Assembly (NCBI RefSeq): GCF_003918875.1 | Contig: NW_025766447.1 | Coordinates: 3,472,001-3,536,000, forward strand | Reading direction: 5' to 3' | DNA length: 64,000 nt | Source: Haliotis rubra | Taxonomy: Eukaryota | Shown here: positions 40,401 to 49,400 of the stretch, in pieces | Position numbering within the stretch: position 1 is the stretch's first letter | Layout: each line of letters begins with the position of its first letter | Notes under the pieces: generated by a model | What the model was told of the DNA's origin: nothing | The model's database searches: none | The model's input: the letters and a program-made list of their open reading frames with translations, nothing else | Program-made: the position numbers and the translations under genes

Positions 40401-43400
40401 TGTTTAACAACGCACTCCACCATATTCCAGCCATATCCGTGAAATAACAGTGAGTGAGTGAAAGATTATAGTCCCAGCTGCACACTGGGGACCTTTTCTA
40501 ACTCAATTCCCAAAGGGATCCGTAAGTTAGTGGTAGTTATACGAGCAATTATTCAAGTCAACAGACTATGTCCAGTATTGTTGTTACCAGTTGTTGGCCT
40601 TCTCCCCTGCCAGTCTGGTACAGTGGATGCGAGACTGCTGGCCGGCACCGATACCAATAACCTGGAAAACAACCACAATGCACAATCAATAAGGCTTGCC
40701 TCCTCTCTGATAGTCATGAATACAAACTTTGGATCCATCTATACCATTCAAAAGAAGTTATGGGAACACTGATTCTTTCATATATTATGGTTCAAGTGGC
40801 ATGACAGATTTCCAACAGTGAGTGAGTATGGCTTTACGCAGTGTTTGCAATACTTTAATTTTGCCAGTTGGCCACCAGGGTCTGCTGCCGCCTGCAGGCT
40901 TTAAAATCAACAGGCCCATTTTGTTAAAGTCAAACCAATACAAACAAAATAGACTACACTGTACACAGTTTCACACTGTTTCTACAATATAAATTAGTGA
41001 AGCCTATTGTGGATGATTCCTGAACGTTGATAAAGGAAAACTATGGGAAAGATTCCAGTTGAAAAACAAATGACAGATAACTTACTGAAGGCCACAAGGG
41101 CCTGCAAATAGTTGAAACTGCCGGCCTGATACAATAACAAACAGCGACTATTTCGAACGATGGCTACACGCCACTTTTAGCAATATTCCAGCAACACTAG
41201 AAATGGGCTTCACAAATTGTACCCATGTGGGGAATCGAACCCGGTCTTTGGGGTGACAAGCAAACACTTTAACCACTAGGCTACCCCACTGCCCCGATTT
41301 CCAACAGTGATACGAAAGAATCAGCTGTTCTTTAATTTCTTTTGAGTAGTATTTTTTGTTTCTGTATCATCTCCAAGGAAAAAAAAAATGTCACACTTAT
41401 GAGCTTTGCCTGAAACATGAGATTATCCTGTATGAATATTAATATGGAGACGGTCAACTTCACAGTTATGAACATGTCTCAGTTTCTCCATGGTTGGAGT
41501 GTCCTCCATACTGTAACTACCTCTTGTTGTGTAGCAGGTGGGCTCAGGTGAAATGTTGGAATCAGACCACCCTCCAGGAGGGCGTGTCATACGAACGAGA
41601 CAAACTCATCATGGCCTCAAGTACTGCTACACTAACAAGTTATTAATTAACTCTGGTTCAAGCCAGTTCCACAACCTATCCCGAATGATCTTAAATGGAT
41701 TTCATTTTCAGGAATTTCCATTGAAGTGTCAGCGGTTCATAATACTGAACAAACCCTAAGCCTTTCAATGTTAGCTAGCAGCCTTGCCAGGTACATATTT
41801 ATACAGATCAGAAAGTCGTACCTGTCCATCTCGGGCATAGCACACAGAGTTAGACTGAGTGTACTTCAGAGCGATGCTAGCCACTATCAGGTCCCGCACG
41901 GCTTCCTCTGGGAGCTGAAACATTCAACACAACACTTCAGGCATGGATTCATCCTTAAAGAGAGTTAAACCTTTCTACAGTATTTTTGAACGGAAAACAC
42001 AAAGTAACGCTTTAGTTTGTCATTAATCACTACACTCAGCAATATTCCAGCCAAATGAAAATGGTCTCTAATCAATTGATTATTTCAATCATTTAGTTAT
42101 TCATTTCTTTTTTTAAGGCAAACCCATAATCACAGTATGCATATGCAACTAGACACACCACCACATAAAGATTAGCAGATCCTGTGATGACTGATGCTGT
42201 GGCTGATCACAGGAGGATTGCTCAAGACATCATCTGTGGGCACGCACCTCACACACAAAAATCTCACCTCCTTTCTCTTGGATGTGATGTTTGAGAAGAG
42301 GTTCTTGTCAATAACTGCATCATTCCTCTTCTGCTGCATCTGGAGACCAAATAACGTCCTTGTCTCCAGCTCAGGAGGGTTGAATGAAGGATCAATCTGA
42401 AATCATTGAAATATATACATATATGGTGTGAGTAATCTGTCCTCCATACTGTAACTACCTGTTGTTGTGTAGCAGGTGGGCTCAGGTGAAATGTTGGAAT
42501 CAGACCAACCCTCCAGGAGGGTGTGTCATACGAACGAGACAAACTCATCATGGCCCAAGAGCACCTGCGCACAGTTGCTTCTGCCTTCACACTACAGGCT
42601 GCTGCTGTGACAAACTAAAGTCAAACAATGATAATAATTGTCTCACTAGCATTATACATGCTGAAAACAATTTTTCAGGACATTTTGTACCTCAATGATT
42701 TATGATGTTGGAGTAAAATGTAACACCAGGTTAACCTTGCAACCACACACTGTTGCTTTTCTGGTCTGAGATTCAACACTCTCTATTTACGATTAATGTA
42801 CCTGGAGAATCTGTCACATTGTGGTTACCTGCAAAATACAATACTTTCCGCCCTTCTTCTTTTTGAGTATCTCCAGGGCTGCAGGTTGATAACCAGGGGC
42901 CACAACTCCGTCAGAAACCTGAAATAATGACAAAGTTATTTATTAACACCCCTCACCTAATTTACTACCCACCTCACCCAAATCTATAACCCCCTCACCC
43001 ACATTTTCTACCCCCACCCATATCTCTTGCAAAAAAAACCCTATTATCTGTATGTATTATGGGCCAGTGGCCTCCTTACTGAATAAACTGTCTGTCTGCC
43101 ATATCTCTTGCCCCCACACCCCCACATATCTTTTTACATTTTCTACCCCCACCCATATCTCTTGCCCCCACCCCCACATTTTTCTACCCCCACCCATATC
43201 TCTTGCACCCACATTTACACTCTCACATGTGTTAGAAATTGCTATACATTGATTTCATAGAATATAATGGTTCCCAGGAAATCCATGTTACAGTTAAAGA
43301 TTGTATTCAACAAAGTAGTTTACACTTGCATTTCATAGATAAATAACATCTAAACTCGATGCTTACTTCTCGAGATATTATCTTGGCTGTAGATACATCA

Positions 43401-46400: not shown

Positions 46401-49400
46401 ATGGTGTAGGTGCTGTTTATACTAGTCGGGACTTGACTAGTTTTGTAATGCCAGCTTAACCACAGAAAGAAGATAACTCTCACTGATGTATGTATGTACA
46501 TGTATGTGCAAGTGTTTTTATCTTTGTTGTACCCAGTGAATGCCCATGCTCACCTTGACTGCCATCCTCTGCCTCGTCTCCTCCACGGTGTCCTTGTTCG
46601 TTGAGTTACTCATCTCGTCACAGATCCTGATGATGTCCACAAGATCAGGCATTAGACAACACAATACAACAAAATCCATATACTAGGATATTAAATTATG
46701 TTTAACAAGCAACTATCACCAACTGCACTGACAGTGGTCATGAAAGTGACCCACCTCTGCTCCTGGATGAACAAAAAGACACACCATCAAACCAGAAGAG
46801 AATGTAAATATCAATTGGACTGAACAAATGATTAATTTTTCATTTCAACTGAAGTAAAGTGGATTGTTCCAGATATAATTCTTGTCTCCAACACCCACAT
46901 AAAAACAGAAACATCTACAATGGAACTGAAATAGCTGGTGACAACAAGATGGCACTCAGTTCTATTCTCATAACATCTTGGTCTCATATTACCAGTCCTA
47001 CGGCCAGAATCACTTCACGCTTTACGTCCACCTCAAGTGGGAGTGAGTGAGTGAGTTGGTTGGTTTTTATGCCACTTTTAGCAATATTTCAGCAATATCA
47101 TGGCAGGGGACACAGAAATGGCCTTCACACAATGTTCCCATGTGGGGAATCGAACTGGGGTCTTTATCGTGATGAGCGAACGCTTTAACCACTGGGCTAC
47201 CCCACCCTCCCCGTCCACATAAGCCGACATGCAGGAATATAACTGGGATAATGTTCATGGGGCTTTAAACACTTAGGTCTGTCTTAATAGTAACAGTGTC
47301 CTTACGTGCTGTAATCGGTGGGGTCACACACTACGGTCACTCGTGCATGGTTCTTAGCGGCTGCCCTCAGTAAGGTGACACCTCCTGTAAACACAACGCA
47401 TGCCACGAATATGCTTTAGGGAATAAATCAACAACAGGATGATGCTGCAGTTGTGACATCATAAACAGTATTATACTCAGTGCACGATGACCTAAAATCA
47501 AGCTTGTAGCCACCCATTCCAGATGTGTGTGTGTTCACACTTAAGTTGGTGTGTACCTATTCTGAAAGAAAGGTCTAAGGTATGTATGTGGTCTACACCA
47601 GTCAGCAATGACTACTATATCATGGCGGTCTGTAAATCAACATGATCAAGTCAGGTAACATGATCAACATTTGACGCTGTTGAGCAGATGACACACAATC
47701 AGACCACAAACAGCATATTATACCCGACTCCCAGTATGTTGGTTAAAACAATAAGCCTGAGGTCCCAGGTGAGTGAGGTGATAGCAGGCTGTATACACTG
47801 CATCCATGGGGGAATTGTACCTGGGAATGTGTATCTGCAGTGAGTGAGTGAGTTTAGTTTTATGCCACACACTGCAATATTCCAGCTCTATGTAAATAAT
47901 CGAGTCTAGACCAGACAATCCAGTGATCAACAGCATGAGCATCGATCTGCCCATTTGGGAACCGATGACATATGTCAACCAAGCCAGTGAGCCTGACCAC
48001 CCGATCTCTTTAGTCACCTCTTACGACAAGCATGGGTTAGTGAAGGCATATTCTAACCCGGACCTTCACGCATCATGTACATCTACAGAGTGTGGGTGAG
48101 TGAGTGAGTGAGAGTGAATCGAACCTGGGTATGAGTATCTACAGAGAGTGGGTGAATGAGAGAGTGAGTGAATCGAACCTGGGTATGTGCATCTACCGAG
48201 AGTGTAAGAGTGAGCACTGCAAGACCCACCTATGTCGATCTGTTCCACGGCCTGGGCTACAGTGGTATCAGGGTTGGCCACAGTCTTCACGAAGGGGTAG
48301 AGGTTACACGCCACAACTCTGGTACAACATACACATATTGTCACGATTGCGTAATTATCCTTAATTATTACCTAGTCCTAATGGTATCAGTCAGAGCTCA
48401 GGTTGTTTTGCTTTAATCAGAACTAACCAACAAGGGCAGTTCATACGAACGAGACAAATACTCATCATTGCTCAGACACTTCTCAGAACATCATTAGGTC
48501 CAAGATGTCCATGTGTGTGACTGATACTCAGTGTATCAGTAAGTATCTAATTTGAAACAATTTTCAAACTTGATTCTTCGTAAACAACATTAATGCCCAG
48601 CGTGAGTACAGGTTGAAATGAGTAAAAAATAGAACTAACCATTATGGACTGTCAATAAGAAGTGTATAAATTAGTCATGGCTAAGACACTTTTTAGAACA
48701 TTATTAAGCTGAAGATGTGACAATTTTCAATTTTCCAGTTGACAAAATGCGTGCCAAAGAACCCCGGAAAAGGTGTGTCAGTCTCATAATTTTTCAAGTC
48801 AGGTCTACTGTCGGAGTCTGCATTTGCAAACTTTCTTTGGGCCTGAAAGAAGTTGTGTCTCTCACCGCCGTTAGCACTAACCACCAGGTCTCGTCACATC
48901 CAGTCAGAAGGAAACCTAGGGACACTATAACAATGACGCTAACAAGCTGTTGGTATCCTGCATTGAAGGAAGAGAACCTTTTCCCCTGATTCTGAACCTA
49001 CAACTACATCACTCAATCTTGAACCTACAACTCGTGCAAGGGCCTTGTTAGTCATTATTCAGGATAATAGCCTGTATAACTGAAGGTTAAGGGATCCTGC
49101 TAGAGCATCATATAAATGAAAAACATAAGGAGTATTTTATGTCACCATAAATCTGTTTAAAGCTCAGGATGTTTACTCAAATCAGAACTAACCATCAAAG
49201 GTAGTTCATACGAACGAGACAAAAATTCATCATTGCTTAGAAGAGATCTCTGCCCAAATATATCTGAAAATAGGCCATGATGAGTGAGTGAGTGAGTTTA
49301 GTTTAACACCGCTCAGCAAAATTCCAGCTATATGGTGGGGGTCGGTAAATAATCGAGTCTGGACCAGACAATCCAGTGATCAACAGCATAAACATCGATC

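Follow-up and report, generated by a model that had tools for sequence, protein, structure and literature searches.

Four intronic box C/D snoRNA genes with a predicted 18S rRNA target in the ATIC gene of the abalone Haliotis rubra

The analysed stretch of DNA, hereafter the window, comprises 64,000 nucleotides of Haliotis rubra (contig NW_025766447.1, positions 3,472,001 to 3,536,000) and carries on its minus strand the gene ATIC (AICAR transformylase/IMP cyclohydrolase). Four copies of a small nucleolar RNA (snoRNA) of the box C/D class lie within the introns of this gene, all in sense orientation, and were designated c1 to c4. A first-pass annotation, made from the letters alone, had noticed four sense intronic copies with common boxes, guide, hairpin and stems, and had placed two of them in intron 4 and one each in introns 12 and 14. 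All four were found to match the full box C/D layout, and the intron numbering was reproduced by our exon map, in which the exons were handled singly and the numbers 4, 12 and 14 assume a short first exon. The bit scores given with the features refer to R1, a covariance model built from the four ATIC copies.

41539-41617, minus strand: c1, box C/D snoRNA, sense in ATIC intron 14 (R1, 88.3 bits)
42477-42556, minus strand: c2, box C/D snoRNA, sense in ATIC intron 12 (R1, 97.3 bits)
48394-48473, minus strand: c3, box C/D snoRNA, sense in ATIC intron 4 (R1, 99.2 bits)
49159-49238, minus strand: c4, box C/D snoRNA, sense in ATIC intron 4 (R1, 98.6 bits)

The window holds four exact matches to TTTGTCTCGTTCGT, each of them on the minus strand (41591-41604, 42530-42543, 48445-48458 and 49210-49223), against a chance expectation of 0.37 with two mismatches tolerated, and none of 100 shuffles reached four. 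Each unit is about 80 nt long. The 5' half consists of the 5' stem of 3-4 bp with one unpaired base, box C (AUGAUGA), a spacer of 1-4 nt, the guide and box D' (AUGA), while the 3' half holds a hairpin, box C' (CUGAUU), a divergent spacer of 12-13 nt, box D (CUGA) and the 3' stem; AUGAUGA, 1-4 nt, UGUCUCGUUCGU, AUGA is a compact pattern for the family. Boxes C and D of c1-c4 agree with the RUGAUGA and CUGA that the class requires. Degenerate internal boxes are usual in box C/D snoRNAs; here D' and C', with the hairpin between them, are unchanged in all four ATIC copies. The terminal stems measure 3-5 bp each, and their paired bases change on both sides (c2 GGGC/GCCC, c3 GAGC/GCUC, c4 AAGC/GCUU), with swaps between G-C and A-U at two pairs between the subtypes.

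The division into two subtypes with covarying stems, also proposed in the first pass, was recovered. The identity of c1 to c2 is 96.7% and extends over 123 nt, which take in the snoRNA and 38 nt of 3' flank; that of c3 to c4 is 86.6% and stops exactly at the snoRNA borders, with unalignable flanks. Between the subtypes, the only alignable stretch runs from box C to D'. The bare 80-nt units fold with z-scores from -0.8 to -1.9, a low level that C/D snoRNAs normally show. In a snoscan-like pass over the window, which missed c1 itself at the 4-bp stem cut-off, no additional C/D candidate with 10-nt rRNA complementarity was returned. On these features, the assignment of c1-c4 as canonical intronic box C/D snoRNA genes is well supported.

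Only five loci fitted when R1 was run over the whole 1.38-Gb assembly, the four in ATIC and a fifth, c5. A decayed copy lies in addition between c3 and c4.

48602-48685, minus strand: decayed copy of the c3/c4 subtype in ATIC intron 4, between c3 and c4 (R1, 16.1 bits, E 0.28)
C1557:3798144-3798230 (= L072:4945-5031), plus strand: c5, box C/D snoRNA, 262 kb from the window (R1 match)

Copy c5 has an NDUFA4/B12D gene (PF06522) as host and lies there in sense orientation, with an exon on either side. It carries the guide of the ATIC copies, D' AUGA, a 9-bp hairpin, C' UGAUU and box D CUGA, within a terminal stem of 8-9 bp, and folds with a z-score of -4.5. Its C box reads AGGAUGA, and a pattern-based genome count of four loci was therefore an undercount. 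The decayed copy can be aligned with c3 and c4 over its full length; its box C has become ATGACTA and its box D CTGT, neither D' nor C' survives, and the guide is scrambled. It serves as an internal control, being a unit that decayed throughout where selection lapsed, while c3 and c4 retained boxes and guide. The boxes kept in c3 and c4 despite their diverged flanks, the homology between subtypes confined to the stretch from box C to D', and the whole-length decay of the neighbouring copy together point to purifying selection on the intact copies.

The ribosomal DNA of the same genome was found by a conserved 18S pattern and confirmed with Rfam, and all three copies read carry GAUAACGAACGAGACUCUAGC. 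The guide GUCUCGUUCGU forms 11 contiguous Watson-Crick pairs with 18S ACGAACGAGAC (L003:1509-1519), ending at the base that adjoins D', and nowhere else in the 6.6-kb rRNA unit does it fit as well; the three U residues on its 5' side take no part in the pairing. Position 5 of the guide, counted upstream of D', opposes the second A of ACGAA (L003:1513, approximately A1377 of abalone 18S). The copies have in this way an antisense element of the kind expected of the class, with at least 9-10 bp beside D or D' and the target opposite position 5. The earlier prediction of ACGA(Am)CGAGAC as the 18S target, equivalent to human Am1383 and attributed to SNORD30, is borne out by the genome's own 18S and by the literature, since SSU-A1383 is methylated in human and zebrafish and is assigned to SNORD30 (PMC5027482, PMC5389715, PMC7668251). 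No guide had been assigned to the human site before 2016 (PMC5389715, PMC5027482, PMC7668251). The adenosine equivalent to Am1383 is thus a well supported predicted target of methylation in abalone 18S.

Further targets were sought and not obtained. The spacer upstream of box D gave no match of at least 9 contiguous pairs with 18S, 5.8S or 28S in either subtype; as it also differs between the copies, it is probably a spacer only. A second guide at this place was accordingly rejected, and its likeness to the D guide of snoU2-30 was considered superficial. Dual targeting of 18S and 28S, as in vertebrates, was rejected as well, because abalone 28S differs at the critical base: at the equivalent of A3804 it reads GGAUUAACGAGAUUCC (UUAACGAGAUUCC; UUAACGAGA), leaving a C-U mismatch at guide position 3, and no 28S site scores well for the abalone guide. 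With this mismatch the abalone RNAs are predicted to be 18S-specific.

The relation to SNORD30 (U30; RF00088), known from vertebrates with SNHG1/UHG as host, is seen in the guide. The Rfam consensus of SNORD30 (...GGAAUCUCGUUCGG-CUGA...) holds the core UCUCGUUCG directly upstream of D', as in abalone, and brings the same 18S adenosine to position 5. The remainder of the RNA is unrelated in sequence, and D' is AUGA in abalone versus CUGA. By our own reading of the consensus, the vertebrate element GGAAUCUCGUUCGG forms 12 bp with 28S GAACGAGAUUCC (A3804) and 9 bp with 18S, i.e., it is tuned to 28S, while the abalone element has its 11 bp with 18S and is not predicted to target the equivalent of LSU-A3804. 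The zebrafish paper reports that SNORD30 guides both the SSU and the LSU site (among PMC5027482, PMC5389715, PMC7668251). The text of PMC5027482 assigns SSU-1383 to the D element of SNORD30, unlike the consensus, which shows the core upstream of D'. We read the vertebrate sequences as one element that serves both sites, and the invertebrate form as probably 18S-specific, since 28S there is UUAACGAGA.

Searches with Rfam models give the other side of this comparison. SNORD30, with a gathering score of 40 bits, gave no match over 41000-50000 even at E<=10, and at this threshold the same region showed only weak generic C/D matches (snoU2-30, SNORD60, snoZ43 and snoR1). The best match of the SNORD30 model genome-wide (C623, 39.2 bits) was rejected, as it is AT-rich and has neither a UGAUGA or CUGA box nor the guide. 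Human SNHG1 hosts both SNORD30 and SNORD31 (PMC7154078), whereas the abalone hosts are ATIC and NDUFA4 and not a non-coding gene of the SNHG1 kind. The Rfam scan found no SNORD31 in the window, so that the adjacency of the two snoRNAs in SNHG1 does not recur in abalone. Abalone SNORD31 forms an array of 16-17 tandem copies of 40-51 bits over about 11 kb (C2442:161620-172948, minus strand; L054-L056), with no other Rfam snoRNA and no SNORD30-type neighbour among the copies. Amplification of a guide within one cluster is, judging by this array, a habit of the genome and not a property of ATIC. The abalone copies probably act like SNORD30 on 18S and share ancestry with it, yet they fail the formal test of family membership.

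Relatives with the same module were found in metagenomes. Contigs were scanned with the pattern TGATGA, 1-6 nt, TGTCTCGTTCGT, NTGA, and 36 eukaryote-like contigs (L012-L047) matched, the matches carrying box D and terminal stems and scoring 22-48 bits with R1. Pairing of the terminal stem reaches 90% across 21 family members, with double changes at all four pairs, against 27-49% in shifted registers, and the covariation score was reached by none of 500 shuffles; these members had been aligned by fitting to R1, a procedure with some bias towards the structure. The 3' halves of the metagenome members are unrelated to those of the abalone copies, and several have a second conserved guide that is absent from abalone. 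In one contig (L023, presumed termite from the sample name), the family member at 4759-4824 lies 370 nt apart from a SNORD31 of 64.8 bits (5137-5203), upstream of it, and this pairing recalls SNHG1. In another, the member sits in an intron of cytoplasmic leucyl-tRNA synthetase (L014:652-735; PDB match, E 3e-35) and shares with abalone the layout of D' AUGA and C' UCUGAUU. A third contig (L019) carries two family copies 1.3 kb apart, near SNORD79 and a tRNA (35-119, 1320-1407 and 3357-3430). None of the 36 contigs holds ATIC exons.

Other ATIC loci were collected by a protein search with exon 8, which yielded the genomic fragments L060, L061-L064, L073 and L074; a query with exon 5 gave transcripts or compact genes, and a word search with a full-length moth protein gave insects only. 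Fragments L061-L064, from a non-Haliotis animal (Logan runs SRR33471281-SRR33471290), carry an exon 8 with 95.6% amino-acid and 80% nucleotide identity to abalone, and their introns are unalignable with those of abalone. About 150 nt upstream of this exon, in intron 7, there is a family member of 32.8 bits (L061:650-729) with the AGGAUGA box seen in c5, the same guide, D' AUUA and a 5-bp stem. Intron 7 of abalone ATIC has no family copy. No guide core was found in introns 4-11 of L060 (ATIC exons 4-12), in L074, which covers a whole ATIC gene, or in L073 (exons 6-8). On the fragments sampled, hosting by ATIC is patchy, extending beyond this species yet absent from other animals. Judged from the loci at hand, hosts change freely across lineages, from a SNORD31 neighbour to leucyl-tRNA synthetase, ATIC and NDUFA4, and switching of snoRNA hosts is well documented (PMC2817437). 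The abalone set resembles multicopy intronic arrays, such as those of the SNORD32-35 type in RPL13A or the several snoRNAs per intron in Drosophila or plants, in having paralogues of one guide in one host, more than one per intron, and duplication with birth and death. It differs from them in that the host is a gene for a metabolic enzyme, and not a ribosomal-protein, translation or non-coding host, and in that the copies are spread over three introns and belong to two old subtypes.

The identity of the host is given by exon-by-exon matches to PF01808, PF02142 and TIGR00355 (purH), and all ten TIGR00355 matches in the 1.38-Gb genome fall within this locus. The parts of the gene that bear on the snoRNAs, mapped from translations and splice sites, are as follows.

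37500-51911, minus strand: ATIC, coding exons 2 to last
49745-49811, minus strand: ATIC exon 4
48319-49744, minus strand: ATIC intron 4, holding c3, c4 and the decayed copy
48230-48318, minus strand: ATIC exon 5
42829-42918, minus strand: ATIC exon 12
42397-42828, minus strand: ATIC intron 12, holding c2
42268-42396, minus strand: ATIC exon 13
41822-41914, minus strand: ATIC exon 14
40588-40661, minus strand: ATIC exon 15

Exons 10, 9, 8 and 5 are joined at the mapped sites in a spliced contig of 2470 nt, which belongs to an RNA run of a related organism. In exon 9 (45060-45186) the frame shifts by one base near 45122-45125, just after ...GWQLVR, and the exon has 127 letters in the window against 128 in the RNA and DNA contigs of the related organism; the shift has the look of an assembly error of one base in a run of G, and not of a broken ATIC gene. 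The introns contain very high-copy interspersed repeats at 44400-44600, 45200-45600, 47000-47400, 47800-48200 and 49200-49400, recognised by enormous contig depth in all runs. The snoRNAs of intron 4 are flanked by two copies of a repeat unit about 180 nt long (47892-48070 and 49345-49523), which are 91% identical to each other. Both intact copies of intron 4, c3 and c4, are covered by a DNA contig of the related organism, with 2 substitutions and 1 gap relative to the window over 49159-49310, which includes c4. For c4 with its flank this contig diverges by about 2%, as against about 5-6% (substitutions and gaps) for the remaining intron. Directly 3' of c4, 49053-49158 comprises 106 letters in the window and about 15 in this contig, a difference that reads as an indel of about 90 nt between species or alleles.

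The copies fall into two groups by their position within the introns. Between the 3' end of the snoRNA and the 3' splice site downstream there are 81 nt for c2 and 75 nt for c3; an optimum of 70-80 nt for splicing-coupled assembly of intronic C/D snoRNPs was reportedly found by Hirose and Steitz in mammalian cells. Distances to the 5' and the 3' splice site are 204 and 877 nt for c1, and 506 and 840 nt for c4; for c1, c4 and c5 alike, the 3' splice site follows some 780-880 nt downstream. By a known rule, snoRNAs at poor positions depend on external stems. Such a stem was found by folding around c1.

41523-41639, minus strand: extended external stem of c1, 6 + 9 bp (41624-41639 with 41523-41538)

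This region folds at -44.6 kcal/mol with a z-score of -3.26, and none of 200 shuffles folds equally well. The external stem of c1 thus amounts to 15 bp and the terminal stem of c5 is long, while c4 has only a weak stem extension; the pattern of stems and positions fits the rule for badly placed snoRNAs. The positions also suggest that the two subtypes were founded by c2 and c3, respectively. The locus may serve as a natural series on intron position and external stems, with two well-placed copies, two badly placed ones, one rescued by its stem and one dead.

We interpret the copies as paralogous, intron-encoded box C/D genes of the ancient SNORD30/U30 guide family, for which ATIC is a vehicle of transcription and splicing and not a functional partner, and which arose through local duplication with birth and death, with c1/c2 as the recent and c3/c4 as the old pair, and with one decayed copy. 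To this explanation as a whole we assign a probability of roughly 0.85. The intragenic amplification proposed in the first pass is part of it and agrees with the four intact and one decayed copies in ATIC; the choice of ATIC as host looks incidental. The mechanism is taken over from established box C/D snoRNP biology. The ATIC pre-mRNA would be transcribed, and the core proteins SNU13/15.5K, NOP56, NOP58 and fibrillarin would assemble where the terminal stem closes the C/D kink-turn. After splicing and debranching of the intron, exonucleases would trim it to an RNP of about 80 nt. The guide upstream of D' would then pair with its 18S site, and fibrillarin would methylate the A that faces guide position 5 at its 2'-OH. 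The spacing of c2 and c3 from the 3' splice site would favour assembly coupled to splicing, and c1, c4 and c5, being far from it, would probably depend on longer flanking stems.

Several observations weigh against this explanation. No family in Rfam reaches its gathering threshold in the window. We found no report of methylation of the 18S site in molluscs, mollusc RiboMeth-seq included. The assembled RNA contigs, which could be compared at c3 and c4 only, show spliced ATIC mRNA and have no coverage at these two copies. By the vertebrate standard c1 and c4 are placed poorly for processing. The immediate terminal stem of c1 has just 3 bp, with an A.C mismatch in addition, and the duplication of c1 and c2, which differ by few bases, is too recent to reveal selection on c1. 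The last points would be accounted for if mature snoRNA came from c2 and c3 only, c1 and/or c4 being poorly processed passengers or young pseudogenes, and the decayed copy in intron 4 shows that copies do die at this locus. We regard this as rather unlikely. Copy c4 keeps all boxes and the guide although its flanks and D spacer have diverged from those of c3 past alignment, and c4 with its flank is the less diverged part of the intron in the related organism; c1 has its strong external stem, of a kind known to rescue badly placed snoRNAs. That the elements are no snoRNAs at all, but repeat copies or chance clusters of motifs, would agree with the Rfam result, the unremarkable fold z-scores of the bare units and the high-copy repeats in the ATIC introns. 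It has next to no probability, and we consider it effectively refuted by the restriction of R1 to five loci in 1.38 Gb, the exact guide to a known and conserved methylation site, the covariation in the terminal stem and the homologues in many eukaryotes.

A different question is whether the host matters. The first-pass annotation had supposed a lineage-specific host relationship that ties purine synthesis to ribosome biogenesis. The former part holds in so far as ATIC is not the host in other lineages sampled, and has to be qualified in view of the member in intron 7 of a non-Haliotis animal. The latter part, by which hosting in ATIC couples the two processes and guide dosage tracks ATIC transcription for the sake of regulation, was not supported, and we think it very improbable. 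It draws on the general link of purine supply and of rRNA synthesis with growth, on the location of four of the five genomic sources of the guide within ATIC, and on the same intron-7 member. The fifth intact copy is, however, in NDUFA4, the family sits beside SNORD31 or in leucyl-tRNA synthetase elsewhere, two other animal ATIC genes (one whole, one over introns 4-11) have no family member, and we found no paper that links ATIC with hosting of snoRNAs; the SNORD31 array shows multicopy clusters to be generic in this genome, and host switching is, as noted, well documented. Hardly more probable is a variant in which ATIC has been a long-standing host of SNORD30-type guides in one molluscan lineage since before Haliotis, the copies having moved among introns 4, 7, 12 and 14 and to NDUFA4, with guide dosage tracking ATIC transcription. 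If it were true, purine supply and the modification of the decoding region of 18S would be co-regulated.

As C/D guides of known type, the copies bring no new mechanism, while ATIC is a previously unreported snoRNA host. The set adds to mollusc annotation snoRNAs that are missed by Rfam, and predicts a specific 2'-O-methylation of 18S. The guide for the equivalent of human Am1383, which was the last orphan among human rRNA methylation sites until 2016, belongs to an old family that is widespread in eukaryotes, and the ancestral form of this guide appears to have been 18S-specific. With its hosts beside SNORD31 and in leucyl-tRNA synthetase, ATIC and NDUFA4, the family offers a clean example of host-gene turnover and of the birth and death of intronic paralogues.

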